From: Rhodosorus marinus CCMP1338
Lineage: Eukaryota; Plantae; Rhodophyta
Assembly: GCA_029953675.1 (NCBI GenBank)
Contig: JAMWBK010000005.1
Span: 1,550,001-1,614,000, forward strand
DNA: 64,000 nucleotides
Reading direction: 5' to 3'
The notes under the pieces: model-generated
What the model saw: the letters and a program-made list of their open reading frames with translations, nothing else
What the model was told of the DNA's origin: nothing
Databases searched by the model: none
Part shown: positions 2,940 through 56,754 of the stretch, in pieces
Layout: each line of letters begins with the position of its first letter
Position numbering within the stretch: position 1 is the first letter of the stretch
Made by a program: the position numbers and the translations under genes

Positions 2940-4852
2940 ATGGATCACTTACTGAGGAGGAAGAACCGTTCGAATGATGCGGAGAATGGGCTTCAGGAGA
3001 AGGATTATGATTCAAAGACGAAGGCCCTGCCCAGGCTTCCGAGGCTAACCCGGCAGAACGCGAAGAGTTATGCTGTAGCGTTGGTACTGTGTCTCGTTTT
3101 ATGCTTTGTGCTGCTGAACGCGGCTAGAATGTTTTTGTTCAGAAATTTGCTGGGCTCTGGATCACAGACTTACCAAAATTACGAATTGAGGTTCGTGAAC
3201 AAGTCGACGGCGATGAGGCAGATGGATCGAAACATGATGATTACAGCAAATCATAGAATTAACCTAAGAGAGCACGAGAAATTCATGACGAGGTTAATGA
3301 CTGTTCTGGACAGGGAAATTTCTCATTGCAACTACACCAGAGGCAATGCGCTTAATCTGTGCTGTTTGGTGAGTAGGTGATTGCAGAACCATTTGCAATG
3401 GGGGATGTTCTCTAATACGCGCTCTTCCAAACTTGGAATCAGTTCCGGAAAAATAATGTGATGAGATGCTTCCCATCACTTATCGGAATTGGAGCACAGA
3501 AGAGCGGAAGCACGGTCCTCTTTGCACGCATGATGGTAGATTCAAGGATTCATCAGGGTGATAAGAAAGAGCATCATTTTTTCGACTTTGACGACAGATG
3601 GGTTTTCGGGGCCGGTATGTATCTAAGAAGCTTTCCGGGGTTAAACCAGCAACAGATTTACGAGGGAATTGCTGCGGAGTATACTCCGTCCTACATTCTT
3701 CCGAGAATGGCAATGCGCCGAATGCGAAACTTGCTTCCGCATTCACGTTTGTTGATGGTCGTTAGAGATCCCGTGGATAGGGCTTGGAGCGAGATTCAGA
3801 TGAAACTGCGAAACGACGAAGCGCTAGTTGCCTACACTCGAACGTTGATGGCCGATCAAGACATTTCTTCTTGCTTTGTCAAGTACGGGAACTCAGCTTT
3901 TTTCAAACATCGAGTTTGCCGATCAATCTCAAGAGCCGCTTTCTTTGCTTCGTTTTCGGATAGGGGAAACGCAACGAGATTTGACAAAGTCTTCAAAGCC
4001 TGTGTCCCTAAAAACCTGCAGAAAAGCCCAAGAGCGTTCGGCTTTCAGATTCGAGCCACGAGATTCTTCCGCAACACCACCAGGGTCAACGACTGCATTG
4101 ACCAGCTGAAGCTCTCGGACATGCCTGGCGAGACCTGGACACACTGTATGATTACTCCTCCGAAAGACATGATCGCGCTTGAGGATGACGAGCACGACAT
4201 AGTGCAGGATCTGTATAGGGAAAGAACTCAGCTCGCTAATTGCTTCAAGACTCAGCAAAGATTGTGTCACGGAATGGCAAACCGGAAACCTTCGGACATT
4301 AGCACGGACTATTTATACCGGGGTACGTACTATGTGCAATTCGGTTGGCCCTGCTCGCGGACGAGGAAGCGCTGTTCTGAACGTCGCGTATATCCCTTAC
4401 GCTACCTTTTGTGCAGGGCTTTACGCTTATCACATCGAGGAATGCTGGAGATGGTTTCCGAAGGAGCAGCTACTTGTAATTGAAAACGAGGAAGTGAAGT
4501 CAGAGCCGGATAAAGTTATGCAGAAGATGCTTCGGCACGCAGGACTGCCGCCAGTAGATGCTGGCAACGATGAAGACGCATGGAAAGAGTTCAGGAAGCA
4601 CTATCCGGGCTTTGAAGATTCTACAGGCTGGAAGCATTCGAAGCCTATGCCAGATATACCCGCGAAGGTAAGCAGAAAAAGGCTAGCTACATTCCCTGAC
4701 TCTCATCAATTCGCGGCCTTACGAGTTAGGTTCTGTTGCTTGTATAGGTTCGAGAATTCCTAGTTTACTTTTATGAGAAGCCCGGTCAAAGGCTGGAGGA
4801 GCTGATTGGGAGGAAGTTTCCGCATTGGCAGAAACCTCAAAGACTAGAGTAA
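2940..4852 (+). CDS. Type II membrane (Golgi-type) PAPS-dependent sulfotransferase, heparan sulfate 3-O/NDST-like fold
   Basis: N-terminal TM (YAVALVLCLVLCFVLL), 5'-PSB loop IGIGAQKSGST, EYTPSY, 3'-PB motif RDPVDRAWS, RGLYAYHIEECWRWFPKEQLLVI and a C-terminal FLVYFYEKPGQRLEELIGRKFPHW. Introns 3369-3442, 4323-4416 and about 4668-4747 give a continuous frame. Confidence 0.85.
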
Positions 4853-6665: not shown

Positions 6666-7505
6666 ATGGCTGAGATGACAAGAAGTGAGCTGAGAAGGAA
6701 CCGGGTGCTGGTTTTAAGCACCCGAGGGGTGACGGCTAGGTTTCGCCACTTGATGGAAGACCTGAGGAAGCTTCTTCCTCACGGGAAGAAAGAATCAAAG
6801 CTGGATACGAAGGATAGGCTGAGTTCAGCGAACGAAATCTGCGAGCTTAGGAACTGCAATTGGTGTCTGCTCTTCGAATGCAGGAAACATGAGGATCTGT
6901 ACATGTGGGTGACGTCAATACCCAACGGGCCTTCTGTGAAGTTTCACGTTAGCAATGTACACACTATGGCCGAGTTGAAGTTTGCTGGCAACAATCTTCT
7001 GTTTTCACGTGCGCTCCTGTCGTTTGACGAGAAGTTTAAGAGCACTCCACATTTCCGTCTGCTTAAAGAAATGCTAACCAACCTGTTCTCGGCGCCGGAA
7101 GGACACCGCAAAACGAAGCCTTTCGTGGATCATATCATCAGCTTTCATATTCTGGACAAACGTATTTGGATTAGGCATTATCAGATCGTTGAAGCGACGG
7201 AAGGTCTGAAGACAACGAAGGCTGAGAAGTCCTCATCATCGGATCTCGTTGAAATCGGTCCTAGGTTGGTGTTGAGCCCCGTTCGAATCTTTTCCGAGAG
7301 CTTTTACGGCTCTACGCTGTACGAGAATCCAGTCTTTGTGCATCCCAATGTAGTTCGGAGGATGCTCCGAAACCAGAACTCAAAAGCATATGAGAGGAGA
7401 ACAATTCGCAAGCAGAAGACGGAGAAGCGGAAACAGAAACTCGGAAGGGAGAAGAACCAGGTTGACAACATTTTCGCGGAAGAACCAGAAAGCGAGGAGG
7501 ACTGA
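6666..7505 (+). CDS. BRX1: Ribosome biogenesis protein BRX1 (Brix domain), intronless ORF of 279 aa
   Basis: RVLVLSTRG..RFRHLMEDL..LLPHGKKESKLD, PNGPSVKFHVSNVHTMAELKFAGN, KTKPFVDH, LVEIGPRLVLSPVRIFSESFYGSTLYENP. Confidence 0.95.
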   Translation: MAEMTRSELRRNRVLVLSTRGVTARFRHLMEDLRKLLPHGKKESKLDTKDRLSSANEICELRNCNWCLLFECRKHEDLYMWVTSIPNGPSVKFHVSNVHTMAELKFAGNNLLFSRALLSFDEKFKSTPHFRLLKEMLTNLFSAPEGHRKTKPFVDHIISFHILDKRIWIRHYQIVEATEGLKTTKAEKSSSSDLVEIGPRLVLSPVRIFSESFYGSTLYENPVFVHPNVVRRMLRNQNSKAYERRTIRKQKTEKRKQKLGREKNQVDNIFAEEPESEED

Positions 7506-7719: not shown

Positions 7720-9764
7720 CTACGTGGTTTGCGGAGATCCACTGCGGGCAAGGACTTCTTTGTCGTCCACCGGTTCCTCCTCAGTGGGGCTGGCGTCATG
7801 GCGTTGGTCGTAAGAGGCGTTCGCATCTCCTGGCTCGGAGCTCTCGCTGACTTCTGGAACGACGTTGACTGGTTCTGGAAACCATCCTTCGTCGGGGAAA
7901 TTTGATCGGAACAGAGCTTCTGCCTGTTCGATTGCGCTGTTTTGTATCATGATTTTAGGAAAGATAATTTGAGAAAATCTGGCTTGGATATTAAGGACCG
8001 GCGCGTATTAATGAAGTGGTATGCGGGTCGCGACTCTTACCCTGTAAAGTCAATCTCAACTGGTACATCATGAATCCATTCCAAGTTACTCGGACGGGAT
8101 CCATGTTCCTTTCTTGTCCACATTCGCTGCTTGAAGATTATTCCGCGAGAAATTTTCTCACTATAGCTCTCACCAAGTACGCGAGCCAAAGCACTGCGGA
8201 TGTCCTCTTCCGTACCCGAACCGTCAACGCATTCCGCGTACAAGACGAAATAGCCGTCGCCGCATACCCCCAGCGAGGAATCAACCTGCCAGACTCGAAC
8301 GGTCGACGTACGACTGCCAACGCCTTTTGGAACGATGACCAGCGTCCGTGAATGTCCATCCAAGATTGCTCTTTGAAGAACTCCCACAAACCTCCACACA
8401 ACGTCTTCCTCACCTGTGCGCAGGGCTTGTTAGCAAAAGGTGAAATGTTCCGTTGACCATGGGACTCAACTCACCTAGTCTACCAGGGTCGAACATCGAG
8501 GAAGCAAAAACATGCCTGGTGTTCAACCTATCGCCTGCAGTCGTCAAGATCCCAGAAACCGCTCCATCCTCAAGGAGAATTTCTTCAACGGCTCTGCGGA
8601 GAACGTATATGCTGCCGTTCACAGCAGAGATTCTACAGAAAGCCTGCGAAAGCTCGCTTCCACCGTAGTTGGTCAGTAGGAGCGCGTTTCCAGTTCCATA
8701 TCTGAGTACATTCAAGTCGTCCGTGGTTTCAGCTATAGATGGTTTCCCCCAGAAAAGGAAGTGGCGCAAATACCTCGCAAGAGATGAGAAATAGAGCTGC
8801 AGCAAGTCCCTGCCGTGCTGCACAGATATGGATTTTGGATCTTCAACAAATATGAGAGCGTTTGATATTAGGGTTCGAAGCTTTTCATTCAGCAACATCG
8901 CCTCCATGTACTCATCAAAGTTCGAGCTCGACATCTGCTTTTCTCTTTGCTCGTCGGTGGTGGTATCTGCCAGCGAAGATAGAATCAACTAAGCGTCTGT
9001 CCTTCTTTGGTCGAGATGGAGATATCGACAACCTTCTTAGACTACCTTCATCTGTGCAGATTTTTACAAACCTCATTAAGAGTCGCTTCTCTGGGGCGGA
9101 AATCAGTCGACTCTGGAAGACTTCAGATCTTTGCGAAGGACAAAATCGGCAGTACGAAGATTTGAGATCAGATCTTGGGCAGGGAAGATGGACGCTTCAC
9201 TTGTGAGCTACCTCGACTGAGGAACTCTTTGAATTCCTCCTGGAGTATCTCCAAAGTCCAAGAAAGACGCGTTCAAAGCTTTGAAGTCTACGTAGTCCCC
9301 CCCGCCAGACTTAACGAGAAGGTTTACCATTGTTCCGTTGCAGAACAAAGGCCGCGGGGTAATGTCCACGGAAGCCTAGAGAACGAGGATACGCAACCAT
9401 TAGGTCCGCTATGGATTCGAACTCGGGAACAACTAAGCCGCTGTACCTTTATTGCATCATCGACGGACCCGAAGTTCGCCACAACTTCAATCCGAGACTG
9501 GAGCGATCTATTAGCAAGTTTGATTCTCTCAGAATTGATGCTCTCCCAAGTGTCATTCTCTGTAGCCAGGCCATTAGGTATCTCAGAAGTCCTGATCAAT
9601 TCTTCGAGGTCGATTGTCGTCCAACTGTCGCCATAAGTGGACCCTTTCTCCAAATGAAGCACTTGCCGCCCCGTTCGAGCGATAGCGGCCGCAAGTATGG
9701 ACTCGGATATACCAGTGCCAACGATCACTACATCCACGTCGCCTATATCTATAGCAGCGTCCAT
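7720..9764 (-). CDS. REP: Rab escort protein (Rab geranylgeranyltransferase component A; GDI/REP family), multi-exon
   Basis: N-terminus DVVIVGTGISESILAAAIARTGRQVLHLE, FCRISAVNGSIYVL, and a REP-type C-terminus AEALFRSNFPDEGWFPEP, spread over several minus-strand ORF pieces separated by introns. Confidence 0.85.
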
Positions 9765-16631: not shown

Positions 16632-17003
16632 TTGGAGGATATTAGTCATAATACGTGGTTGGTACGTCTTGATGATTGTCCCAGTTGCTGGGACAGTGGA
16701 GGTCCGCTGTACAGAGCCGATGTGGTTACCAGAACGTTCGTGCAGCGCTCTGGTTGCAACATCGTTGTCGAGGACTGCCTGTCATATCCTCCTCTCTGCA
16801 GTGCTGCAGTGGAGAATTTGAAGGATGTGTATCCGCCTCCGAGCCTGGAAGGCGCAGGGAAATGTTGTGCACAACCAGAAGCGACATTCAAGGTGGTCTT
16901 CACGTTACGCGATTGTCTGTTCGCCCTGGCAACCCTCAAAATAATACGCTCGCCAACGTGCATGACGAGATCTTCTCGAGGTTGGACTGCGAGGGGCAGG
17001 TAG
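16632..17003 (+). CDS. Cys-rich hypothetical ORF; may be an exon or a remnant
   Basis: 123-aa ORF with 9 Cys and coding-like composition; no family recognised. Confidence 0.25.
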   Translation: MEDISHNTWLVRLDDCPSCWDSGGPLYRADVVTRTFVQRSGCNIVVEDCLSYPPLCSAAVENLKDVYPPPSLEGAGKCCAQPEATFKVVFTLRDCLFALATLKIIRSPTCMTRSSRGWTARGR

Positions 17004-17157
17004 TATGGTTGGGCTCCGCAATGGTCCTTCGCGGACTCTCCCGCTTAGGTGTGAGGAGTTCAGTGAGTGGAGTTCATAAGAAATCTTTCTGATCTTCTCT
17101 ATTGTTACACGTTAGGAATCAATGTTAGGTATCTGAGGTGAGTACCTCTGGCTTTCT

Positions 17158-20100
17158 TCAAAAGTCCAAGGTCAAGAGGAACTCTCGGCATTGAGCGAAG
17201 CTCGGTCGTTGCCTCGGTTCTGTATGCCAACACCTTTGCATTAGCAGCTTGATCGCATGCGGCCATTCGGGCTGCAGCTGAGGTCTGAGTCCGCGGCTAG
17301 AAACAGCTATTCCAACCTTAAAAACAAAAAAAAAAGGCGACCAGAACCCACATTTAGACCCTAACAGCATACTCTTTCTAATCCGTCAAAGAGCTCATCC
17401 AACCCTGTTCATGAGACCATACCTGCATAGGTTGCATGCCGAAATAAGGGAGCTGCTTCGCTGCCATTTCCCAGAGAATAATACCGAAGGAGAACACGTC
17501 TGCCTTCTCCGAATATGGACGACTGCCCAGCACCTCTGGGGCCATATACTGGAAAGTGCCACATTGCCCGGTCATCGGACCAAAAGACTGCTGCACGCGC
17601 GTGAGACCGAAATCTCCCACCTGTACACACACACAACCATCATTTGCATCTGTGAGCTTTTCTCTCGCTTCCTAGCTCCTGGACGATAGCACCACTCACC
17701 TTAATGTCAAAGTTGTTGCTCAACATGAGGTTCGAGCTTTTCAGATCCCTGTGCAGAAGGTTAGATGAATGAAGGTACATCATCCCCTGGCACAAATCAA
17801 GTGCCATCTTCTTATATAGTGCCCACGGTGGTTTCTGATTTTCCTTGTGCAGGTAATCAAAAAGAGTTCCCCGGGCGCAGAACTCGGTGACAATGATCAG
17901 GTTGGGTGGTTGAGTACACGCGCCCATGAATCGAAGAATATTAGGATGATTAAGCGCGCAGAGGACTGCAACTTCCCGTTGAAATTCTTCGATCGCTTTT
18001 CTACTCTTCAAGGTGTTTGCATGCGCCTTTTTTATGGCTACTATCTCGCCTCGGAAAAGACCTGGAAGCAAGCACAGGAGAGTAGCGAATGTAATCAGAC
18101 ATAATGAGAAACGGCACTCTGCGTTGTCTGGGCTTCATACCTTTGTAAACGGCGCCAAATCCGCCTTGGCCTATGAGCTTCCCGTATTGTATTTCCATTG
18201 GATTGACGATATGCTTCGGTGTCAGTCTTAGCTGACCTAGGTCTTGAATGGGCTGATCCGCCACGTGGCTAATTTCCGACTCTGAGTGAACCTCTCTCTT
18301 TGACTTTCTCTTGGCTTTTTTGCTCTTCTTAGTTTTGGAAGTTTTCGACTTTCTCCGAGTCCGTTCTACAGAACTCGAACCGTCCGAACTCGGACTCGCA
18401 CTGTCTCGGCGCCTACTAAGCATACGTGGCTGTAACTCAGTATGGAAAATTGATGCAACAGGCAGTGACAAAACCATTCTATTAGTCTCCGCACCTTGAG
18501 CTCTCCTTCTTTTTAGACTTTTCCTTCTTTTTCCGACGATCATCGGAAGTTCTTCTGTTCTTCGTAGCACTCCCTCTGGAATCATTTGAATGACGGTCAG
18601 GACCCCCCGAGCTGTAGTCTGCGGAATCAGATCCAGAATAATCTCTTCGCCGCTCCTCCTGAAGCGAATACTGAGATTAAAAAATCCAAAAGGTTCGAGA
18701 AATTGCTTAGCTGAGAGCCCAACCGAAGTCACTGCTGTCGAACAACTTTTCACGGCATCTCACCCGCGGAGCTCTTCCTCTAGCAGGAGGCTGGTCGTCG
18801 TAATGTCGCGAAAGTGGGACACGTTCCCGTCGATAGTAATCGTCGTCATGATGGTCCCTACGGTAGTTGCGGGGTCGTTCCTGTGAATTTAGGAAAACCT
18901 CTCTGTGTTAGAAGATTGTCCGTACACTATGTGAGATAGTTTTGCAGGTTTGAGTACAGCAAATCGCTCAGGTGGGTAAGGCGGCGGCTCGCGGTATGCA
19001 TTCCGAGGAGACCTATCCAGCTCGGGCCGATAGGATGCTTCCCTATATGCTTGTCTAGGAGGTGCAACCTCGACAGGGTTCGCAGGCGAATCTAGTGGGG
19101 TACTAGCCAGCATCTCTGCCACTTTTGGGGGCTGCGGTGTTGAAGTACTCGCCCTCCTACTCGGCAGATGGCGTACGTTCACCTTAACACCAGCTTCAAA
19201 TCCGGAGGAGACCCGCCTAGTCTCATCATTCTCGGAGCGCTTCGGCTGCTGTTTTCGCAAGCGGTGAAATAGTTTAGCATATCCAATCTGTAGCTAATGC
19301 CATGGAGAACGGGAACACTTACGGGTGCTGAGGGAATATCTCTGTCCTTCTGTTGTACCTCCCGCCGGGACTCAACTTCGTTGTCAACGGGCAGCTTTGC
19401 CATCATTGACTTTGATCTCCTGACGCGTTGGAGGTCGTTCGATGTAGCGTTAACGAGTCCGGAGCTTCCCAGGCCGTGAGCTCCATTGACGGCAAGTGCA
19501 GGTTCATCTGAAAGTTTCAGGAGTATCTAAAGGCAGGACGACAAAGCTGATTGCCATGAGACGGACGGAAACCGTGTTTCCCGCCTGCACCAGTTGCTAA
19601 GAAGGAACTACCTCGCCCCTGCACAGTTTGGCAGCATCGGGATTAGACAAAACTCCTTCCATAGTTTCTCTAGTGGCCTCATGGCACGCTCGGAAAACAT
19701 CAGACAGCTCAACCTGCTCTTGTTGCTGCGCCGTTTCAACAAGAAGGCACGTGCACGTGTAGGCGGCAGTAACTTCAAGAACGAGTCCCGGAACAGCTGA
19801 ATAGCTCAGGTCCTTGCAATTGTCAGAAAGGAGAAGTGCTTGAACCAGGGAGTTGGCTTTGTCGAGGATCTCTACGCTCATGGCCCAAAGCCGTCGAGCG
19901 AGCAAACTCCCATGATTAGCTTTCGAACTGGTTATAAGTAGATGGCATATTTTCTTGACTAACCGTGAATGCGCATGATTGCCGGCATCCTTCGACCGGC
20001 GATAGGATCGCTTCCGGCATCAAATAGAGTCCTCGACCAGTTTGGGAGGAAGGCGTCACTGTAGTCAGTATAAAACTTAGCCTTCAGGGAAACCAGCTGC

Positions 20101-22326
20101 GCGAAAGCGGTAATTTCGCCGTTGAAAAACGCGAGGGTTTTATCCTCCTAAGGAATTTTCGGACAAAGGCCAACGTCGGAAAACAAAATTTCATCAGTAT
20201 GTAGCGTAACTCTCCCTTGACGCGTCTCCTATCAGGAGCAGGGTCGTACCTGCTCTGAAGCTGCGTACTCCTCGATCCAAAGAAGAAACTGCTCCTGTTT
20301 CAGACTTTGTTCCAAGAATTCCACAGGTCCTTCGAGGCTTAGTCTGTGCAACAGCGCGACAGTTTTGAATCCAATAAAGCTCGACTTCTGAACAGGTTTC
20401 TTTCGAAGGCTCTTGTAGAGCTCCTCCGAGTAGTCCTTTCGGAGCTGGGCCTCTACTATATGGTAGCGCACATACTTGTCGTTGATAGGAAGGGCACTGT
20501 TGTCTACTACCTTGTTTACCAGAAAATCCACGGACGCCTGTGATAAAAGTAAAAGCAGTATCGAATTAAGAATACCGAGAGTTGTTCCCAATTCGACCAC
20601 GTAGTCGAATATCAGCGTCAATTCCTCACCTCTTTTCTCTTGGTCATCAGCTTTTCTGATAGGCTCCGCAGCACAGTTATCCCGTTAGACGGAGCCAGCG
20701 TGCTCTTCATTTCATGGCTAGCAACAGGAGTTTTCTTCCTCGCGGGTTTCAATGTGGAACCAGATTCTGAGGAGTCCAAAGCAGTATAAAGTCAGATTAG
20801 GAGACAAGCATGAAAAAAGAAGAGCGCCCAACTCGCAAACGGGCCAGGAAGGCTTGCCTATCTCTCCCTCATTGCGCGGGGTCCAGTCGAACTTGCATGG
20901 CACAAGTTGTCCTATGGGATAGCCTGTCAAAGAAATCGCTCTTACCTGGCGCTGCTCCTGGTGCTAGTTCTGAAACTCCAGGCTCGGCGATGGTTTGAAC
21001 TGTTGATCTTCCTCGGCTTGGAGCCATACTAGCACTTCTCACCGGTCGAGAGCTATTATCAGCCGGAATAGCGACAGCCTCAGAACGGGTTACCCTAGCT
21101 AGCTTTCCTGTAGAGGGATCATCTGCTTCCGAAGTATTCACTGAATCTTCGTGTGTTAGCCACACGATATGAAGGGTCAGACGGCGTATGCGAAACATAC
21201 CTTGAGAATTTCTCCTAACGGGACTGTCCGACGTGAGCTCTTTGGTCAGTCGCTTCTCACGCTTCTCCGGTTTTCTTTGCCTCGATGGGCGAACGGGGGT
21301 AGTTTCAGGCACTAAACCCTGTCCAACCGCGACTTCGAATCGAACCGCATCCATCGTAAGGGACTGCTTCCGGTGTTCATGAAGAAGTAGCTTAAGCAAA
21401 GACAGAACCTTCGGCGAGCATGACTTGGACTCCGGCGGAATACTATTTGCAAAATCGGACGATTTCTTCGTCTTTAGGCCGGCCGGTGGCTTCCGTGAGA
21501 ACTGGAGCTCGTACACGAGAAGCCCCAGCGAATAAATATCGTCTTTCGGGGAGTTATCTACAGTAAAAATCCGTTAGTCACAACGATGCTCAAAACTCAA
21601 GCCATAGCTTCGACTTGAACTACGTCAGGTTGTCCTACCATTGGCACGGGACCGACTATCTCCAAATCCACCAATTTTCGCTCGTAAATCGGTGCCAAAT
21701 TGAATGTGATCCATCACCAGGTCCCCATGTGCCTTTACGCCGGCATCGCACAATAACAAAAGTCCTGGAATTCAAAACCACGACGAACTATCAGTGAGCG
21801 AGAGCAAGATCGCGCACAAAATTGGAAACCCTTCTCGAAGGATGAATATGCCCCTCAAGTACGAACCGTTGCACACATCCCGGACGATGGAAAATATCTG
21901 GGCCTCGGAGATGCTCTTCGGGAACTCTGGTTCCGGGAGGTACTCCATCAGATAGACTACTGATTGCGGCTCTGAGTTGAAGACGATACAATCATGGAGC
22001 CGAACAATCGTTGCCGGCCATTTCTCATCCTGTTCACTTCTAATAATCTCAACGCAGCCTGGCATGCTATCGTTCGCTGCCACTGCGTTCACACCCACAT
22101 GCTTCCACAGAGCAGCCTCCTTGACCAATTTCCTGATCCTTTCCTCCGATTCTCCAAACTGCCTCTTCGCACACAATTTCAAACCAGTATTCGTATCCTC
22201 CACAACAGCCACCGTCGACACAGAGCCGCCCTTCTTTGCAGGAGTCAACGTCTTCACCATCCGAAGACTCCATTCTCTTCCACTTATCCCTTTAGCTTTC
22301 AGCAAACCCCCAGATTGGTCACCCAT
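17158..22326 (-). CDS. Multidomain protein: N-terminal pseudokinase, ANTH domain, charged low-complexity linker, C-terminal Raf-like/TKL Ser/Thr kinase
   Basis: C-terminal kinase has all motifs (GQGGFGAVYKG, VAIK, HRDLKSSN, DFG, GTFQYMAPE, DVFSFGIILWE). ANTH-like segment VNKVVDNSALPINDKYVR...FKTVALLHRLSLEG. N-terminal kinase fold CAKR/KEAALW/YLMEY/HGDL/DIYSLG. About 15 exons splice in frame using GT-AG sites. Confidence 0.75.
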
Positions 22327-23153
22327 ATCTTCAAAACTATCTCTTCCCCGGCCCTCGAACCCCCCTTTTTCAATACCTAAACCGTAAGACAGTCATCATA
22401 TCCATCTTATTGAATCTCTTCTCTCATTTCATCATCTCACACCGCTTCCCAATCCTATTCTCCTCCCCAAATGCACCTCAACCGGAAACACCTCCCTCAA
22501 CCCCCAAACCCCCCCCCCCTTTTACCACTGCCCGAAAGAAAAGACTACCAAATTCCCACACCGAAGAAACAATAGTTTACTCAATAATATTCATTGGACA
22601 ATGCACACATTTGGCCATTGTTACTAAACCGTTCGCATGCCTTCCCCAGCCCCTCAACTCTGTCCACACACCTCTCCATGTTCGGAGGCACTAAGGGGAA
22701 AGGCTTACTTTTTTAGAGGTAGGACCATCTAAATCACGTTGTGCTTCTATTTAAGAATCCTTGATTTTCATAAACAAGAAGGACCTTGGAGCAAGTAATG
22801 TTTAGAATAAAAATAATCAGATCAGTTTAGAATATGTTCCTTTATTTTAGAATACATTGGCTTAGAGCGTCGGGTAAACGGGGAGGGTTTTAGTGCCGGA
22901 GTACCTTCTATGGGATGGGGAACGGAACGAATCTTCCGGGCGTTAGCGACTGCTGTTTCTGATGGATGTGGAATTCTCTGTATGCTGTAGATTTACGGGC
23001 CCCTTACTGAGCTGTAGAGCCGTGGTAGTGCTTCCACAAACAGGAGAATCGACATGAGAGCACTACAAACAAATGGTCTGTAGTTTCAGCCAATCAGCAC
23101 TACGTTGAGGCTTTCCCTTCTTCAGCCTCTATGTTTTCCGAGCGTCATGGCGA

Positions 23154-26293: not shown

Positions 26294-29227
26294 TTACTTC
26301 AGCTTGCCACCTTCGGCCACACCAGCACTGCTCGCGAGCGTGTTGCTTTCGGCACTCTTCAGAACATACTTCTTCTCAAACAAAACTGATGACTCTTTTC
26401 CTACTCTAAGCCCCTTGCTCGCGGCTTGAAATGCTTTCCTGTCCAGAGCGGAACTCGGCTCCGATCTAGTACCTTCTGGCACCAGTCGCTCACCAATATT
26501 GGCGTCCGAGACCTCAAGTAGTTTTACATCCTTCTTCTTTTCTGCGGTTAGCATCATTCCTTGGCTTTCTATCCCAGCGAGTCTAGTTCTTGCCATATTA
26601 CACACCACGACGACCTTCCTACCGACAATTTCCTCTCTGCGGCAGAACAAGCAGGCAAGGGCAACCATTCAGAAGCTGGAGGATCTAAGAGAGAAAGACC
26701 GTAAACGCCATACATACCTCTTGTAGAACTCACGTAGACCGGCAACAAGTTCGCGTGGATTCTCTTCGCCAACGTCGACTTTGCATATGAACAACGTCTG
26801 ACTTTCTGGGTGCTCAACGCACTCATTGACAACGCCGACTCTCAGGTCCAGTCGAAAGACGGAATCTGCGTTGGCATCCGCCTGCACAGCAGAAGCCGAC
26901 CGCTCAGCTTGACTACCCGCGTATTTTTTCCTTAGCTCATCCCTCTCTTTGTCCTTGATTTCTCTAAACAAGAGTACAGGCTCTCCTGTTCGGTGTCCTG
27001 TTTTGAGCTTGAAAACAAAATGATCGCTTATCTTCGAGGTCGCCGCGGTGGCCTCAACGCCAAGCATCGAATAAACTTTCCCAGACCATTGGCTGCCTAG
27101 GAAGGGCTCCAAGAGATCGGCGAGCAGGTGCACTAAATTGCTAGCGAAGGCCAACACTGATCCAGCCCGCTTCTTGTCGGTTTTATCCAATACCCAGGGC
27201 TGATTGGTTTGAAGATATTGATTGCCGATTTTGGAAATGGCCATGGCCTTTTTGATTCCGGCCTTGAGAGCGACCTTTTGACCAAAGAACAGAGCACATC
27301 TTAGAAGCTAGTAAACCCAAGCGGACATCTTTCACTCACGAGAACTCCTTGGGTGCGGGGTTCACCTTATCCATTTGTTTGATGTACTCTTCTACCTCCA
27401 AGTTAATATTAGCGACGACCTCCTCATCCTCCTTCGATAGTTCCATGAGCGGTATCGTCGAATCAAAGTTTCTCGTGACGAAGGACAGGGTGCGATTTAT
27501 GAAGTTTCCAAGGTTCTTCAGGAGTTCATCGTTGTTTTTCGCTGTGAAGTCCGACCATAAGAACGTCGAATCCGCGAGTTCGGGACGATTGCTTAATAGA
27601 TAGTATCGCCAGACCTCGGCGGGGATATTCGTCTCTTTGGCGTCTGTTCCAAAAACACCGACTCCTACCACAATAAGAGGAACTCGATTGGTTAGAATCC
27701 CACTTGGTCAAATCTTCAGAACACTGACGGCTGCGATTCGACGGATAATACCATTTCGTTTGGAAAACTTCCCATCCTCATAATTTAGGTATTCCGTTGT
27801 CGAAATCGCTTGCATCCTAGTCCAGTCCTTCCGGGTAGCAATGAGCGTCGAAGGAAAGATCACTGTGTGGAAAGGTACATTGTCTTTCCCCATAAACTGA
27901 ACGAGTTCCACGTCCTGTCCTGTGCACCCAAAAGTACCCCGAAAGCCTTGTTAAGTTCTGCTCGCTGCTTCAGAGAACAAACAGCATTTTCGTCAAAAAC
28001 ACGCACCCGGTTGAGGAAACCACCACTTCCTCCACTCATCTGTGCAGCTTGCAGTGATGCTTATGTAGCCAATCGGGGCGTCAAACCAGACGTAAAAGAC
28101 CTTATCTGTATACCCTTCCAGAGGTACCGGAGTACCCCATTTCAAGTCCTGACGAAAGAGTCGAAGCGGAACACCGAGTCGAGGTCAGCGAACCGGCGCA
28201 GAAGCTGATTTGCTGTTGGGGGCTGTGTACACACCCTTGTGATACATCTCTGTCGTAGACCATCTCGCAGCCAGGTCTGGGTCATCGTCAAGGCATTGGC
28301 CGACCAGTCTCCTTTCTTTGAAGTTTCCTCAACATACTTGGCAAGTTCATCCTTGAGCTCTGGCAGATCTAGAAACAGATGTTTCGTTTTTTGAACCTAA
28401 TACGCAGATATGTAAGTTTCAGGACTTGCCTGCAAGTATGGGTCGAGTTGCAGTGCGAAAAAAAGTACCTCTGGTTCCGTTCCACACGTGCTACACTTAG
28501 CCGAGATTAACTCGATTGGATTCAAAAGGCGTCCGCAGTTGTCACATTGGTCACCTCGCGCATCTTCAAATCCACAAAGCGGGCACGTGCCTTGCACATA
28601 TCGATCGGCGAGGAAACGCTTATCGTTATTGCAGTACAGCTGTTCGAGTTGTCCCTCAACTACGTAGCCATTCCTGACATAACAAGAATAAATCTCCTTT
28701 TAGACGACTAGAACCGACTTGGTGGAAACACACCCATCCGAAGCGTACTTGTGAGCGTCCCAAAATATTGCTTGGCAGATTTCTGTCTGTTCATTCGTGG
28801 AGGTACGCCCGAAATAGTCAAAGTCAATGTCGAACCACTCGTACACCTCGCGATGCAACGCATTGTATTTGTCGCAGATTTCCTTCGCTGTAAGGCCCTC
28901 TTGCTGGGCTTTCGTTTCAGTTGCCGTGCCGTACTCATCTGTCCCACATACATACAAGCAGTTGACCCCTCTCTGGCGTAGATACCTCGAATAGACGTCC
29001 GCGGACAATACTGCGCCGATGAGATTTCCCAAGTGTGGAACATTGTTTACATACGGGAGCGCCGATGTGATCAAGACATTCCTCTTCCCGGTCGCTGGCA
29101 AAATCTTGGGCTTTTCATCACCCACCCTCAGCCAGGATAGCTTCCGGTCCAACTCGGTCGTCATCCTTTTAAGTTCTCTCACAATTCTTCCTATACCGCT
29201 TCCGTTCGCCGCAATGCCCCGCTGCAT
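26294..29227 (-). CDS. MARS: Cytosolic-type methionyl-tRNA synthetase with C-terminal EMAPII/Trbp111 tRNA-binding domain; 5' end may extend further
   Basis: [17 protein letters not shown] (HIGH), [11 protein letters not shown], Zn knuckle [34 protein letters not shown] (KMSKS), RLDLRVG...[18 protein letters not shown]. Confidence 0.95.
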
Positions 29228-42164: not shown

Positions 42165-43838
42165 CTACTCTTTGCGCCACGATTTCCATTTTTTTCTGTT
42201 TGGGTAGTTTAGGGACGATACACGATTAGCACTTTTCAGAGAATTTCGCAGATACTCTTTGCCATCTATGAAAAGTTCTACGCAGCAGCGACACGTACTG
42301 ACTTTGGTCGCCCAACCAGTATCCTTATTTGGGTCCAGTGGTGTCACTGGTCTAGGCTTGTACGGGTCTCCGTTTACCAAAGCGCATCTTTTCGGCAACG
42401 GTTCCTCCTACAAGACGAAACGCGGAGAGAATGAAAGGCAGGGGCGATCAGAATCAATACAAACGGACGCGACTTAAGAATGGGGGAGCGTACCCTGAAG
42501 AACTCATGTTCTAGCGCTTGCTCGGCTGTAATCCGCTTTGACGGATCATACTCAAGCAATTTGGAAAGGAGGTCAAAGCCAGATGTCCCTGGTCTAAGGG
42601 CTGGTACTCGTTCATGCAAGATGTTCTTACTCTCCCTCCAGTTCTGCGCTTCGTTCCTGAGAAAGATTTTAGAGCGTGAGACATGAGTAAATAGAAAGTA
42701 ATTCGAGAGGCAGATGCTCTTGTTGTGTCTGAAAACGCGCGTACCAGTGCTGCAAGTCCACGATCCCGGGCCACTCCTTCTGAGTAGGTTTGCCAAGAAT
42801 TCTAAAAATCTGGGATACTTGATCCGACTGGAACGGATTCCGATCCTCTCCTTTCCGAATCTTTTCTTGACCTTGAAATAGAGGTTTGCTCGTGATGAGC
42901 TCCGCAAATATGCACCCGATTGCCCAAATGTCAACAGCCTTCGTGTAGTGTTTTGCCCCTGCCAGTGGACACCGAGGAAATGGTCTCAGCGGTGAGGAGC
43001 CCACTCCTGAAGGAAACATCTAGGACCCACATACCTAACAGTAGCTCTGGTGCTCTGTACCAAATTGTCACTACAACACTGTCCACATCTGTGAATGGAC
43101 GAAGCGGTGCTTGGAACAGTCTTGCAAGACCAAAGTCTGCTATCTTCACACATCCCTGTTCTTCAACAGGTTTGTCCGAGCCGGTGACAAGAATGTTGGA
43201 AGGCTTCAAGTCTCTGTGGATAACCCAATTTTTGTGCAGGTAGTTGATCCCCTGCAAAATCTGCCACAATAAGGACTTAACAGTTACCGGATCCATTCCA
43301 GCTCCCTACAACGGCGCGTGGAGAGCAAAGGAATCAGTTGCCTCGGATTTTCCACAGGTGAGAGCTGTACGCTGGAAATTACCTGATGAGCATGATTGCT
43401 TCTGATCATTTCGAGGAGGTCATGATCCGCGTAGTCAAAAACGAGATACAGAGCCTTGTCATCGGGATCAAGCATCACATCCATCAAGTCGACAATGTAA
43501 TCGTGTGAGAGCTCTCGAAGGAGCTTGATCTCTCGGATAGCCGTCGGAGAGATACCATCCCCACTTCTAAAAGACTTAAACTTCTTTACAGCCACAGAGC
43601 GCTTCGCCACTGCCACTTCACCTTCAGCGATCACCTGGGCCTTGTACACTAGTCCATACGTTCCTTCCCCAATCTTCCCGATAGGATCATACTTGTCTCT
43701 ACAAACCGAGGACAAAAACAAAGCCAGTGAAGAACCGTAGAGTTGAGTTACAGGTGCAGGGCTCGTGAAATACCCTCCGCCAAAACCTAAAAACAGGAGA
43801 AGTCTTCCTTACCGGAGAGACTTTCTCAACATCGTCAT
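42165..43838 (-). CDS. CDK8: Cyclin-dependent kinase 8/E (Mediator kinase module)
   Basis: [14 protein letters not shown], cyclin-binding helix [68 protein letters not shown]. The 3' end is approximate. Confidence 0.92.
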
Positions 43839-45165: not shown

Positions 45166-48100
45166 TCACTGGAAAAAGCAGCTTTGCACAATTAGGTTAA
45201 GATTAGTATGGAGGGCGGAAGAACCTAAGTCACGAGTGCTCGCAGCAAGTCGGACAATCCCCTCCAGGGCCGAACGTGCGGTGGGACTCGATCCACGCCA
45301 CAAATTTCTAGCCTCAATTCCAACGTCGTCCTCCCTGTGCACCAGCTCCACGGTGAACTCGGGTATACCAAGTGCTCGCAACACGTAACAGAGGACTGAC
45401 CGAAACTCTTCCGCAGAATATATCTGCTCATCAACAGCTGGTTCACTATGGGAGCTCATCAGTCTTTGAGAAAGGGTGAGCGCCAGGGAGGCTAGTTCGT
45501 CCGACAAGCTTTCCTATGTTCCGTACACACAGGAAAGAAATTATAAGAAAACTGGTGAGCGTCAGCAAGCTCTTTCAGCGCGCCGCCGATAGGATACCTT
45601 GTAGCGTGCCGAGGAAACCACGCCTGGGGCGTATTCACCACCCTCCAGCTTCCGGATGGCAGACAGCAATGCTCTCCAACATACAGCATCGAACCCGTCC
45701 ACTGCAGTGCAGGGCCTAGTTCTGGAGGGTACGGGAAGCCGTGCAAGTGACCGACAAGCACCTATGCATACCTTGCAGTTGCCAGAATCTCTCAGCGCAG
45801 CGCTGAGCCCTTGCAGTGCAGCCTCCCAAGCACGATCTGCTTCGTGCGGTATGACCGGAGCAAGCGCATGACACGCGTTCCACCTAACTTTGACGTGTTG
45901 CTGCTGATCTGCTGCAGAGGCTGACACGACTTCCACCAATAGGTCCAGCTCGTTTCTTTCCTGCTCCTGGAAAAGCTTATCGATCAGAGCCGCGGCTGCT
46001 CTCATCGCTGCAGCGCGAATCGTCCAGGAGCTGCAGGATAATCCGTCATGAACAGCGTTGGCTATCTGGGCGTACTCGGAATCCGTGAAATGCCCAGCTT
46101 CAACCAACGACGAAAGGCTCGTTAAGCTTCTCGCACGAATATCAGATTGGCTCTCCCTAGCGCCGCTAAGTATGACCTGGTAGCACGCGTTGAACGAGTT
46201 CCGAATTCCAGAAAACCTCTCAAAGCCTTTGATGTACAAATGAGGTCGTTCAGTCATCCGTGAGGTGTTTATCGGAGATAGTTTTCGCCGATGGAAAGGC
46301 CTTACCAACTAGGTCGCCGATGGCAGAAACTGCGACTGCTCTTACGCGAAGGTCCTTGTCCGAGGCACCGCTCAATATAGTCGTTGAGACCTCTTTCGCA
46401 GTGCTGGCATCCAGCAATTGAAAAGAATCGTTGGGTATCGTTGCTAGAACTGCTATGGATGTCGCTCGTACGCTATGGAAAGAATCCCGAGCAGCCGCCC
46501 GCAGTTGCACAGAGATCACTTCCCACCACCAACCAGGAGTCAGAAAGCTTTCTCGAGAAGCCGCCATGTTCTTGATGCACCGAACAGCATGCAGCCTCAA
46601 CGCTTGAGTCTGGTTCACATCTAGAGCATCTGCAAGCAGAGAGCTTACAAAGTGCCAATGCTCCCCTATTTCAACGGCGTAGTTGATGCACATGGACTCT
46701 ATGCCAAGTACAATCTCTGCTCGAGGAACAGATGGATCCGGATTATAGTACAAGGACGAAAATGACGATAGTAGACCAGCAGGATGACCTGGAGATGGGC
46801 GAAAAGAGTTTAGGTCCCAGAGAAGTCCGCCCAAGATATTGCCTTTTTCGATGACGCTTACGAATACGTTCGGCCAGAAATCCACTTGACGGTGCGGCGT
46901 GGGCGTAGTGCGTGGCGATCGAAGAAAGTGCTCCGGCTCTAACTGTTGCATCTGTTGACGGGCTAAAGCAAAGCCCTTCGAGCTCATTCATCAGCTCCAG
47001 AGACATAGTTTCTGAAATGGAAGGAGGTGGAGCGCTTATCGCAAGCGTACTCGCACACCGCACCACCTGAGCAAGCACTGTTGGATTTGTCTCATCCTTC
47101 AGGGATTGAGTCAAAACGTGGCAAGCTGCTTCCGCGTTCTTCGTCATCTTTTCGGAGAGGCTCATGAAGGAGGTCCTAGCTTGGGTACCCCCACCACGAG
47201 AATCTGTACTCGATTTCAATGGTTGAGTGAACAGCTTCCGCGAACGACTGATCATCTTTCCAAGGGCTCCTAACGCAGCTCCTCTTATCTGCGGAGAGCT
47301 GAGTGGAAGGTAAAATCTCATGGCCTCAGCGAGGTGCCGCAATTTTTTTCAATCCTTCGGGCGCTTCCTTTCGAAAGGTACTTCCTTACCTATTAGTCAA
47401 GATTAGCGATGCAAGAACCTGCTCGTCATGAGACTCATTATCACCGTATCCGCAAGGAAGAAATAGTGCCCACGCCGTGGCGGCTGCATCAGGTAGCTGC
47501 TTCATAAACGCGGTGAGCACGTTCAGAACCGCTAGTATCTCTCCTTCGTAGAGATGAGCCGGATCGAGCCCGTTCCGCCTGCTGAGCTTTTGACTAGTTG
47601 ATCCAGTGTTCAGGCTGAGAAGGATCTAAAAGGGGTTCAATTGAAGTTCGACAGAGCCAGAGAACCGAAGAGAACCGACTGTACCTCGTGAAGCGTCTCG
47701 CTTATTGATCTGGTGAATCCCGACGGTTCCTGAGTTTTGTTCAAGCTTGGTATGAGCTCAGCCATTTCATCAAGAGCGAGTATCGCCGCTTTAGTGTTGA
47801 TACCAATAGCCTTTTGAACGACTTGCTGAAGCGACACTATGGCAGTGAATGGTTGACTTTTCTGCAACTTTTTCAAGTCACAGAGCAAGCGAGATTGCTC
47901 GAGAACGTCTTGAGAAGTCAGCGCTAGTTTTCCCAGGCTTTTGGCACACGAAGCGATCGCCATCTCATCTTCAATGCTAAGCAACTGCTTTTTCGCCAGT
48001 GCAAGCAGAATTTGCGCGCAAATTTGATCTCGAGGAAATCCCAGTAGAATGGAAACCAGCGCACCAGTCGCCTTCGTTGAGAACACTGAAGACCTGAATC

Positions 48101-53239: not shown

Positions 53240-54973
53240 CTACTGCGTCGCCTTGACAACCGCCTCAAGCCACAAGCTGACGGCGACCGCTCCAGGGTCC
53301 GGAGTACCTATAAGTTTCTCGCTTGGAACGTACGACGACCTGCCCGCTTGGGCCAATGCATTTTGGGCAGTGTCACCCGCCCCTTTCTTCGCCGCGGCAA
53401 CCATCGCCTCTAAAGACGAGGAGTTCCTCGTCGCTGGGTAGAGTGCATCCAACATTGTCCTCATGCCTTCCGTAGCTCCGCCGTATTTCGATATAGCTTC
53501 AGTACCTGCGAGCAGGGCGTCCTGCCATGTTCCTCCGTTTGCGACGCTTGATCCAGCTGCCGTGAAGCCAAGATGGTACAAAACACCCGACGTACCTCCC
53601 ATTGACTGGCCAGCCGATAATCCAATCGCATTCAGAGTGCTCGACAGTGAATCCACAGGGTATCCATCAAGATCCTTTAGAATCCGCTCAGCCCCCTGCT
53701 TGAGTGTTAGCCCGCAGTCTCCGTCTCCCACTATCTTGTCCTGAGCGGTAAGCTCAGGTTCCGCTTGTATGATCACCTCACAAGCGGCCTTGATTCTCTC
53801 CTTCATGGCCATTCCAGCCTCGTCCAGCTGTCCAGGAGCTGCAGCTACGCTCGGAGGAGTAACATCTGGACAGTCTACAACGAATACGTCCGGAGTCAAG
53901 TCTCGGAAAGGAAGCCATGACAAGGCGGAGGATGGAGCCAACAGGTAATTCTCCACCCCACTGAGATTGCATAAGCTTATACTGAACCCGGTCATGTCGA
54001 GGCTCGTCATTGCTGTCATAACGGTGATCTTTGTAACATTTATCCCTGCGCCCTGCAAAGCTCGAACAGAATCTCGGACGACTATATTCATTTCCAGAGG
54101 AGGCAGAGTACCCAAATTGTTGACGAGGAGCGCGTAGCTCGCGGTGGAGTCCTTCAGTGACTCCACGACGTGATCAACGAGTATCTGCGCCGTCTCTTTG
54201 CTGGATTTCACAGGCTCCGTAAATCTCCCGGGTTCTCCATGAATTCCGAGACCGTACTCTGTGAGGTCGCCCGCTAACCTGTTCGACGGTTGGGCGCCTG
54301 GTATTGTACAAGTTGTCAAGGCCATACCCATGGATGCGACTCCCCGGGCCGCTTCACTAAGCGTTTGCAAGATCTGTACGAAAGTTAGAGGCAGGGTAAG
54401 GACCAAGTCCACGACTCAGGCAAAAAGCTATATCAAGTTCTCCAGTACCTGATCTTTAGGCATTCCCTGTTCAGCGGCTGCACCCGCAATCTTGATGATG
54501 AAAAGCGCTCCCGCGATTCCTCTCGGCTGTGGTGCGTCCTTGATTGCTACATCATCCGCTACCATGAAGTAGTCACAGTTGTATCCTTCTCCTTTGGCTT
54601 GCTCAACAGCAACGCCAAAGTTGAGCCTATCTCCAGTGTAGTTTTTTGATATTACGATACATCCCGCAGGTCCAGTCACCGCCTTTACTGCGGCGAGCAC
54701 TGCCTCCGTCGACGGAGAAGCAAAAACATCACCACAGACCGCCGCGCTGAGCATCCCCTTTCCAACCCATCCAGCGTGTGAGGGTTCATGCCCAGATCCC
54801 CCACCACATACAAGCGCGACTTTATCCCTCTTGAAATCCTCATCATTCCTTACCACAACCTTAACTGTATTCTTATACTCCAGCCTCGCTAACTTCCCTC
54901 CAGAACCCAGCAGGACCCCCTCGATCGAGTCCTGTACCAACCGATCCTGATCATTGTACAGCCTCTTCGCCAT
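53240..54973 (-). CDS. DAK1: ATP-dependent dihydroxyacetone kinase/triokinase (fused DhaK-DhaL, about 552 aa)
   Basis: GGGSGHEPSHAGWVGKGML, KNYTGDRLNFG, GIHGEPG, GDGDCG, MGGTSGVLY, RTMLDAL, GRSSY, PDPGA. A single intron 54448-54374 joins the two ORFs in frame. Confidence 0.96.
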
Positions 54974-56634: not shown

Positions 56635-56754
56635 GGAGCTGGGGAAGAACTCTGTTTAGGGGGGTTGGGGGGAAGAGAAGGTAGTGTGTGGTGTGTGTTT
56701 GGGTAGTTGTGGTTGAACGGATTTTTTTGGGGGTGAATATTTGAGCTTGTGGAG

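Follow-up and report, generated by a model that had tools for sequence, protein, structure and literature searches.

The clathrin-coat toolkit includes kinases of the NAK family, which dock on adaptor complexes and phosphorylate them, and ANTH domains, which act as adaptors with lipid, SNAREs and ubiquitin as their ligands. The coated-vesicle-associated pseudokinase SCYL2/CVAK104 is a precedent for an inactive kinase fold that binds clathrin and AP in coated vesicles; unlike the protein described here it carries HEAT repeats, no ANTH domain and no second kinase. In a stretch of 64,000 nucleotides of the red alga Rhodosorus marinus CCMP1338 (contig JAMWBK010000005.1, positions 1,550,001 to 1,614,000; the window, within which all positions below are counted) we find a gene that joins a putative NAK-like pseudokinase, an ANTH domain and a Raf-like kinase of the TKL group in one polypeptide.

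The encoded protein shares something with each of four described systems. The NAK/Ark kinases (AAK1, BIKE/BMP2K, GAK and STK16, and Ark1p and Prk1p in yeast) also have an N-terminal kinase fold and give the best profile and structure matches to the N-terminal domain of the algal protein, whereas that domain appears to be catalytically dead. The adaptors Sla2/HIP1R and AP180/CALM have the same fold as the central domain over its full ~260 residues, but in the algal protein this domain lies between pseudokinase and kinase, its lipid signature is kept at three of four positions, and the protein has neither a coiled coil nor an actin-binding end of the THATCH/talin type, nor a long assembly region carrying clathrin and AP2 motifs. 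The Raf/MLK-like TKL kinases (CTR1, STY8/STY17-type, DLK, MLK4 and B-Raf) share the C-terminal domain, whereas the algal protein lacks their ACT, PAS, EDR1, RBD/C1 or leucine zipper regions and has the ANTH domain and the pseudokinase instead. Finally, in the JH2-JH1 arrangement of JAK a dead kinase fold likewise precedes a live one in the same polypeptide, and regulation in cis is conceivable here as well; in the algal protein, however, residues 285-1005 with linker 1, the ANTH domain and linker 2 keep the two folds apart, they resemble different kinase groups (NAK-like and TKL), and FERM and SH2 domains are absent.

The gene and its family

The gene lies on the minus strand, with an ATG at 22326 and a TGA at 17160-17158. 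The coding model, rebuilt by hand and by script from the minus strand (22800..16800, read in three frames), consists of 16 exons and 15 introns. All introns are of the GT..AG type, with sizes of 60-179 nucleotides, and the open frame comprises 1260 amino acids (aa) plus the stop. A full-length open reading frame (ORF) of 1260 aa from the MMETSP transcripts of a sister species, P0102, aligns with the model end to end at 90.2% identity with 2 gap columns; identity is highest in the kinase (98.5%), followed by the ANTH domain (92.7%), the N-terminal domain (91.2%) and the linkers (82-86%). Because P0102 is collinear with the model, all 15 junctions are matched by cDNA-derived sequence of the sister species. 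Among the relatives in other assemblies, an intronless ORF of 1258 aa (L003, 5450-9226) and an intronless ORF of 1195 aa (L004, 564-4151, and L005) contain all three domains, and single ORFs of 803 aa (L001, 4084-6495) and 736 aa (L002, 2227-4437) contain the ANTH domain and the kinase only. The gene of Rhodosorus has 15 introns where its florideophyte counterparts have none. Pseudokinase, ANTH domain and TKL kinase are encoded by one gene. The initial annotation had proposed exactly this, a single spliced frame rather than two or three separate genes, and both the uninterrupted frame of 1260 aa and the unity of the gene are borne out; the order it gave (a kinase fold followed by a linker, ANTH-like helices, an R/D/S/K-rich region and an intact kinase) and the peptides it quoted were all recovered. 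The main features are the following, all on the minus strand.

17158..22326, minus strand: whole coding region of the fusion gene (spliced model, collinear with P0102)
21292..22326, minus strand: putative NAK-like pseudokinase, aa 1-284, introns 1-2 inside (profile, AlphaFold2 model, Foldseek, motifs)
20633..21291, minus strand: linker 1, aa 285-424, low-complexity and S/R/P/K-rich, 86% identical to the sister species
19476..20632, minus strand: ANTH domain, aa 425-686, interrupted by introns 5-8, nearest to Sla2/HIP1R (Pfam, profile, AlphaFold2, Foldseek)
20472..20513, minus strand: position of the ANTH lipid signature, K434-x9-N444-D-K446-Y447, 3/4 kept (hmmalign with CALM and Sla2 fragments)
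19503..19523, minus strand: clathrin-box-like L-L-K-L-S-D-E, aa 671-677, in the flexible tail after the ANTH domain (family alignment; tail of low model confidence)
18190..19475, minus strand: linker 2, aa 687-1005 (~320 aa), predicted disordered, R/D/S/K-rich
17161..18189, minus strand: predicted active TKL (Raf/MLK-like) kinase, aa 1006-1260 (Pfam, PDB profile, motifs)

A HMMER search with the ANTH profile against 1.84 billion representative proteins retrieved 67 proteins at E<=1e-3, of which 30 reached <=1e-10 and 19 reached <=1e-30. Profiles of the three parts (hmmsearch) recovered the full order of pseudokinase, ANTH domain and kinase in ~20 representatives of 1083-1306 aa. Family members were found in the red-algal genera Galdieria, Pyropia, Porphyra, Gracilaria, Chondrus, Hildenbrandia and Timspurckia, and in the public protein sets they are listed as 'serine/threonine protein kinase' or 'hypothetical protein'. 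By these sequence matches the fusion family is Rhodophyta-wide, from the Cyanidiophyceae to the Florideophyceae. Members include the following.

Gracilaria domingensis, KAI0567154.1, 1187 aa
Pyropia vietnamensis, GAB0493541.1, 1292 aa
Galdieria partita (P0138), GJQ14531.1 / A0A9C7USY7, 1306 aa
Timspurckia oligopyrenoides, MMETSP1172, 1157 aa
Hildenbrandia rubra, two entries, 1189 and 1196 aa

The public models of Chondrus, Porphyra and Pyropia yezoensis are truncated. XP_005718571.1 of Chondrus crispus (252 aa) holds the kinase only and falls in one 90% cluster with the 1195-aa ORF of L004/L005; OSX78250.1 of Porphyra umbilicalis (270 aa), also kinase only, clusters with an 823-aa full-length ORF of another assembly. 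Judging from this clustering, both are probably truncated annotations of fusion-family members. In the florideophyte-type loci L003 (9374-14353) and L004 (4359-9102) the orthologue is followed by the same neighbours, namely RRS1, a Myb/Cdc5-like gene and a further downstream gene, which in L003 encodes a DHBP synthase/GTP cyclohydrolase II (ribBA); a tblastn search of the window with these RRS1, Myb-Cdc5 and ribBA neighbours gave no match.

More distant relatives carry a related arrangement. P0149 begins with a true AAK1-type kinase (AAK1 2e-74, BIKE 4e-70, GAK 2e-51) in which the NAK hallmark motifs are intact, followed by an ANTH domain of the same subfamily (Pfam, 49.7 bits), and the red-algal N-terminal profile aligns with this kinase at 99.1% probability (hhalign, E 1.7e-18). 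Two further clades, P0161/P0181/P0153/P0160 and P0177/P0162/P0148, combine a NAK-like N-terminus, an ANTH domain and a C-terminal TKL kinase. In local BLAST the TKL domains of the non-red relatives are ~40-43% identical to the red-algal ones, which is no better than to other TKL kinases. A weak match was also observed in P0178 (KAH9260349.1, 1089 aa, labelled Batrachochytrium salamandrivorans BASA81), with an ANTH domain of 32.7 bits and a C-terminal TKL kinase; the chytrid label possibly reflects contamination.

The three domains and the linkers

The N-terminal domain scores 28.5 bits with the Pfam Pkinase model, below its cut-off of 31.7. Its catalytic loop reads HGDLVMDH (21706-21729) in place of HRDLKxxN, with loss of the Lys and the Asn, GFG (21661-21669) replaces DFG, and the activation segment has mostly been deleted, leaving ~15 residues; the beta3 Lys (Lys53) and the alpha-C Glu (Glu70) are kept. 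In an alignment of 19 family sequences the catalytic-loop His, G186 and G188 (G-F/W-G for DFG), R191 and D202 are invariant, the beta3 Lys is present in 17 domains and the alpha-C acid is kept. The catalytic Asp (HGD) is found only in the clade of the Rhodosorus gene; elsewhere the position is mostly Asn, as in the HGN and HAN forms, or else His, Tyr or Arg. With catalytic losses that are conserved in its relatives, the domain is, as far as the alignment can tell, a long-standing pseudokinase.

A profile of these 19 sequences matched AAK1 first in the PDB (2.8e-19), followed by BIKE (4.9e-19), NEK1 (1.1e-17), STK16 (8e-16) and GAK (2.4e-15). An AlphaFold2 model of the domain in P0102 had a mean predicted local distance difference test score (pLDDT) of 83.8 and a predicted template modelling score (pTM) of 0.83. 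In Foldseek more than 1900 kinase structures matched it at E<=1e-3, as befits a protein-kinase fold, and the first ten ranks were taken by GAK (7), AAK1 (2) and STK16 (1). Profile and model suggest that the pseudokinase descends from the NAK/Ark family (AAK1, BIKE, GAK, STK16) or resembles it most, with modest margins. The NAK hallmarks HRDLKxENxL and K-L-C-DFGSA and the NAK-type activation segment are degenerate or deleted in this domain, and because only overall similarity is left we call it 'NAK-like' or 'NAK-derived' and not a NAK kinase. N-myristoylation of the MGDQSG start was considered and rejected: by eye, Asp3 does not fit the PROSITE pattern, and the other family members do not conserve the motif.

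With 21.9 bits when the whole protein is searched and 26.1 bits by itself, the middle domain only just passes the cut-off (21.5) of the Pfam ANTH model PF07651, a model that is also matched by six of the eight aligned relatives, with 49.2 bits in Galdieria. A profile of seven ANTH sequences matched Sla2 (1.8e-4) and CALM (0.01) in the PDB, over helices 1-4. In an ANTH fold, ENTH-like helices at the N-terminus are prolonged by additional helices to ~260-280 residues. The ANTH domain of P0102, which is 93% identical, was modelled together with six family sequences as 12 helices (pLDDT 89.3, pTM 0.89), and the first 14 Foldseek ranks were all ANTH domains (HIP1R at 1.2e-6, Sla2, CALM and AP180), rank 15 following at an E of 0.2. 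Template modelling scores were 0.68-0.77 with HIP1R/Sla2 (Sla2 alone 0.73-0.77) and 0.53-0.64 with CALM/AP180. On the combined profile and model evidence we regard it as established that the domain has a genuine, full ANTH fold, nearest to the Sla2/HIP1R type.

ANTH domains bind phosphatidylinositol 4,5-bisphosphate (PI(4,5)P2) through a signature K-x9-K-x-(K/R)-(H/Y) on helices 1-2. In Rhodosorus an Asn replaces the second Lys. The signature is complete (4/4) in Galdieria and in the distant relatives P0161 and P0181, both of which read K-x9-K-L-K-Y; the Galdieria partita domain reads K-x9-K-x-K-H (KATTNTPKPAKPKH), and florideophyte members have acidic or neutral residues at the signature positions. 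Lipid binding at the canonical site would, from these residues, be possible in Rhodosorus, likely in Galdieria and unlikely in the florideophytes. The Galdieria protein GJQ14531.1, with its signature at ~426-445, differs from the other red-algal members examined also in having a UBA domain in the linker (residues 757-785). This is of note because the ANTH domains of CALM, HIP1R and Sla2 are reported to bind ubiquitin (PMC8648300). In the tail that follows the ANTH domain, the family shares a motif L-L-x-L-x-[DE], which is LLKLSDE in Rhodosorus and LLDLGDE, LLNLDER or ILDLDEK elsewhere, with poly-Lys after it in the florideophytes. It resembles a clathrin box, and is a lead that might point to clathrin binding.

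The C-terminal domain matches the Pfam model PK_Tyr_Ser-Thr at 1.2e-68 and has a full set of kinase motifs: GQGGFG at 1012, VAIKK at 1029, the alpha-C Glu, HRDLKSSN at 1125, DFG at 1145 and the APE of YMAPEV. These catalytic motifs are nearly invariant across the family. The first relative in the PDB is CTR1 (1.1e-58), followed by TNNI3K, DLK, MLK4 and B-Raf, and the nearest named sequences outside the family are plant STY8/STY17-type and TKL-Pl-4 kinases with 38-43% identity. To judge from its motifs, the domain is a catalytically complete Raf-like TKL kinase, closest to CTR1. The degenerate kinase fold, the ANTH-like helical domain and the intact Raf-like kinase that the initial annotation had recognised by eye have all held up under these profile, structure and motif comparisons.

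Linker 2, which is both polybasic and acidic, ends in a polybasic stretch (KKKEKSKKK ... KSKTSKTKKSKKAKRKSKR). Some 12 residues before the Gly-rich loop of the kinase a Thr-Pro pair (~18226-18231, aa 993-994 of an alternative model of 1258 aa) is invariant in all eight aligned members, and is a candidate site for proline-directed phosphorylation.

Possible role at coated membranes and origin of the pseudokinase

We lean, by a little, towards the view that the protein is a coat- or adaptor-associated scaffold that brings Raf/MLK-type kinase activity to coated membranes. The NAK-like and ANTH modules would target the protein to coated membranes or to adaptor proteins, the polybasic linker and the clathrin-box-like motif would help them in this, and the C-terminal kinase would then phosphorylate coat, cargo or signalling substrates on the spot. 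The dead NAK-like domain would in this arrangement be a docking or allosteric module and not an enzyme. If this role is true, red algae, whose trafficking and signalling machinery has been little studied, wire a Raf/MLK-type kinase directly onto clathrin-adaptor modules, and the family would represent, in a covalent form that occurs in nature, the functional partnership of NAK kinases (AAK1, GAK, Ark1/Prk1) with ANTH adaptors (Sla2/HIP1R, AP180/CALM).

The same architecture could also serve away from the endocytic coat. The protein would then be a Raf-like signalling kinase of the cytosol or the nucleus in which the ANTH fold has been co-opted for protein-protein contacts or regulation, and the K/R-rich linkers would act as nuclear localisation signals or bind RNA or chromatin. 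We consider this rather unlikely. The RS, RD and poly-K stretches of the linker are typical of nuclear proteins, CTR1 and the plant STY8/STY17-like TKLs, to which the active kinase is closest, work in signalling and not at coats, and a lipid signature that is incomplete in Rhodosorus and lost in most family members would be no surprise in such a protein. On the other hand, two independent coat-associated modules, NAK-like and ANTH, co-occur in the same order in several divergent clades, Galdieria combines the exact PI(4,5)P2 motif with a UBA domain, and the clathrin-box-like motif is conserved.

Several observations weigh against a coat-associated scaffold with a NAK-like module. The PI(4,5)P2 signature, with its Asn in Rhodosorus and its loss in the florideophytes, is absent from most of the family, and the K/R-rich linker might just as well direct the protein to the nucleus. 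The AlphaFold2 models were built on the orthologue P0102 (91-93% identical) and not on the spliced protein of the window. The lead of the NAK assignment over the NEK kinases (NEK1) in the 19-sequence profile is ~5 bits, the Foldseek E-values of the NAK kinases are only ~50-fold ahead of that of the bacterial PknB, and an earlier, shallower profile of four N-terminal sequences placed B-Raf first. In yeast, Ark1p was isolated as a Sla2p-binding protein (PMC2150571), but the two-hybrid contact was between Sla2 residues 503-968 and the non-kinase part of Ark1p, and involved neither the ANTH domain nor the kinase (PMC2150571). Because of this mapping the parallel with Ark1p and Sla2p holds between partner proteins only, and reading it at the level of the domains is ruled out.

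The 'membrane-recruited endocytic kinase' of the initial annotation is not supported as worded, and stays a plausible inference. Since the motif is kept at three of four positions in Rhodosorus, is perfect in Galdieria and has been replaced in the florideophytes, membrane recruitment is plausible but unproven, and canonical lipid recruitment is not a property of the whole family. The same gradient offers a comparative test of the need for lipid binding by the ANTH domain.

As to the origin of the N-terminal domain, it might instead be a decayed internal duplicate of the C-terminal TKL kinase that regulates the active domain in cis, following the JH2/JH1 logic of JAK, and would then not be NAK-derived. 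The four-sequence profile, which matched kinases from 2e-8 with B-Raf in front (2.1e-8) and CTR1 also ahead of BIKE, fits such an origin, as does a weak BLASTP match of the active kinase to another sister-species ORF, P0001, in its N-terminal domain (E 8e-6, 25% identity). We nevertheless think it improbable: AAK1 and BIKE lead with the 19-sequence profile, the Foldseek top ten are all NAK kinases, distant relatives have a bona fide AAK1-type kinase at the same position, and ~720 residues including the ANTH domain separate the two kinase domains. A JAK-like duplication was rejected on the deeper profile and Foldseek, which overturned the four-sequence result, and the 'JAK-like tandem' of the initial annotation does not fit a pseudokinase that lies so far upstream of the active kinase and has its best matches among NAK and not TKL kinases. 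A NAK-derived pseudokinase that has been conserved in this way offers a means to ask what NAK folds do besides catalysis.

On a wider view, which we put forward tentatively, this is an old, unnamed eukaryotic family, a 'Rosetta-stone' fusion of the NAK-kinase and ANTH-adaptor partners in which a kinase of the AAK1/Ark type is joined to an ANTH domain resembling that of Sla2/HIP1R and to a Raf-like TKL kinase, with a live NAK kinase in some protists and a conserved pseudokinase in red algae from Galdieria to the florideophytes, and may link clathrin-coat assembly directly to MAP3K-type signalling.

The initial annotation knew this architecture from no characterised protein, and neither did we find one in the literature searched; it had allowed for the possibility that the architecture is already widespread and described. 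Widespread it is, in red algae and in public protein sets, but in the literature searched, the coverage of which was incomplete, no description of an ANTH-kinase or NAK-ANTH fusion was found. A targeted reading of the paper on the ENTH/ANTH/VHS superfamily met with no mention of an ANTH-kinase fusion. The domains are all of known kinds; their combination, its conservation and the NAK-derived pseudokinase are, as far as we can tell, new.

Splicing and neighbouring genes

The exons of the coding model, all on the minus strand, are as follows.

21867..22326, minus strand: exon 1, aa 1-153, start codon 22326-22324, MGDQSGG start the same as in P0102
21639..21764, minus strand: exon 2, aa 154-195, degenerate HGDLVMDH and GGFGDS
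21201..21557, minus strand: exon 3, aa 196-314, pseudokinase C-lobe and start of linker 1
20946..21140, minus strand: exon 4, aa 315-379, after the 60-nucleotide in-frame intron
20630..20766, minus strand: exon 5, aa 380-425
20250..20537, minus strand: exon 6, aa 426-521, first part of the ANTH domain
19964..20147, minus strand: exon 7, aa 522-582, ANTH domain
19612..19871, minus strand: exon 8, aa 583-669, ANTH domain
19323..19526, minus strand: exon 9, aa 670-737, end of the ANTH domain and start of linker 2
18958..19245, minus strand: exon 10, aa 738-833, NAGNAG, alternative start 19248 adds one Gln
18764..18880, minus strand: exon 11, aa 834-872, flanking introns retained in P0101/P0001 of the sister species
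18495..18670, minus strand: exon 12, aa 873-930, alternative acceptor 18659 gives start 18658 and loses YSLQ
18141..18412, minus strand: exon 13, aa 931-1021, K-rich end of linker 2 and Gly-rich loop GQGGFG
17700..18061, minus strand: exon 14, aa 1022-1142, VAIKK, alpha-C Glu, HRDLKSSN
17423..17620, minus strand: exon 15, aa 1143-1208, DFG and APE
17158..17316, minus strand: exon 16, aa 1209-1260, stop TGA 17160-17158

Four of the introns read by eye in the initial annotation, 21866-21765, 21638-21558, 20945-20767 and the one starting at 20629 (which ends at 20538), are exact; its 'in-frame 54-nt intron near 21200', which follows exon 3, proved to be 60 nucleotides long (21200-21141) and is spliced out in the sister-species transcript. 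Frame-neutral alternatives exist for three acceptors, those of intron 9 (19249/19246), intron 11 (18671/18659) and intron 12 (18416/18413). They were settled by the match to the sister-species transcript, which gives 1260 aa, other choices giving 1258 aa. Introns 9 and 12 have NAGNAG tandem acceptors (19246-19249 and 18413-18416) and intron 11 has two in-frame acceptors 12 nucleotides apart (18659-18671), so that the alternatives amount to small in-frame variants (+/- Q, S or YSLQ). Upstream of the gene, ~190 nucleotides 5' of the ATG in the presumed 5' untranslated region or promoter, there is a run of ~10 G with more G-rich sequence (22505-22520).

The sister species also yields shorter ORFs. 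P0001, an 887-aa MMETSP transcript ORF, was the one close relative found with residues 1-684 as query, and its 90% cluster comprises four ORFs from three consecutively numbered transcripts. An exact look-up of P0001 among the contigs on record gave none that encodes it. P0001 runs into the equivalent of intron 11 (18671-18763) and stops there; P0101 (849 aa) runs into the equivalent of intron 10 (18881-18957) and stops. Because they end by reading into these introns, we take both to be retained-intron isoforms. P0103, a 258-aa ORF with the kinase alone, was called on Transcript_27636, which also carries the N-terminal ORF P0101. That two or three separate genes are present, and that splicing by eye wrongly joined them into a single frame, with for instance a kinase-only gene starting in intron 12, would accord with the in-frame ATG found there (18423-18421), with the 887- and 849-aa ORFs that stop after the ANTH domain or linker and with the existence of a kinase-only ORF, but it is hardly credible and such models were rejected, given that the short ORFs are retained-intron isoforms, that P0103 shares its transcript with P0101, that P0102 is full length and that four intronless homologues join the parts in an uninterrupted ORF. 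With intron 10 or 11 retained, the product would comprise the pseudokinase and the ANTH domain but lack the kinase.

A second, unrelated protein-kinase gene lies on the minus strand at 42374-42934 and 43039-43278; the latter exon has a Pkinase match of 2.5e-23 and shares 34% identity with the kinase of the fusion protein. Exons recognised by Pfam were located in 26669-27244 (-), 28700-29227 (-), 53240-54973 (-), 56749-57903 (+), 58694-59545 (-), 8410-8988 (-), 45562-46987 (-) and 3458-4483 (+). Their products include a methionyl-tRNA synthetase, a dihydroxyacetone kinase (Dak1/Dak2), an iron-containing alcohol dehydrogenase, a saccharopine-dehydrogenase-like NAD(P)-binding protein and a GDI/REP-like protein; weaker matches among them, below the Pfam cut-offs, are importin/HEAT-like repeats and a sulfotransferase-like ORF. 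The ribosome-biogenesis gene BRX1 is encoded by a single exon at 6666-7505 (+), with a Brix domain at 3.6e-46. By this gene the window falls in the neighbourhood of the stylonematophycean red algae: its best named match is from one of them, Purpureofilum apyrenoidigerum (68%), followed by other Rhodophyta, and an MMETSP sequence is 95% identical.

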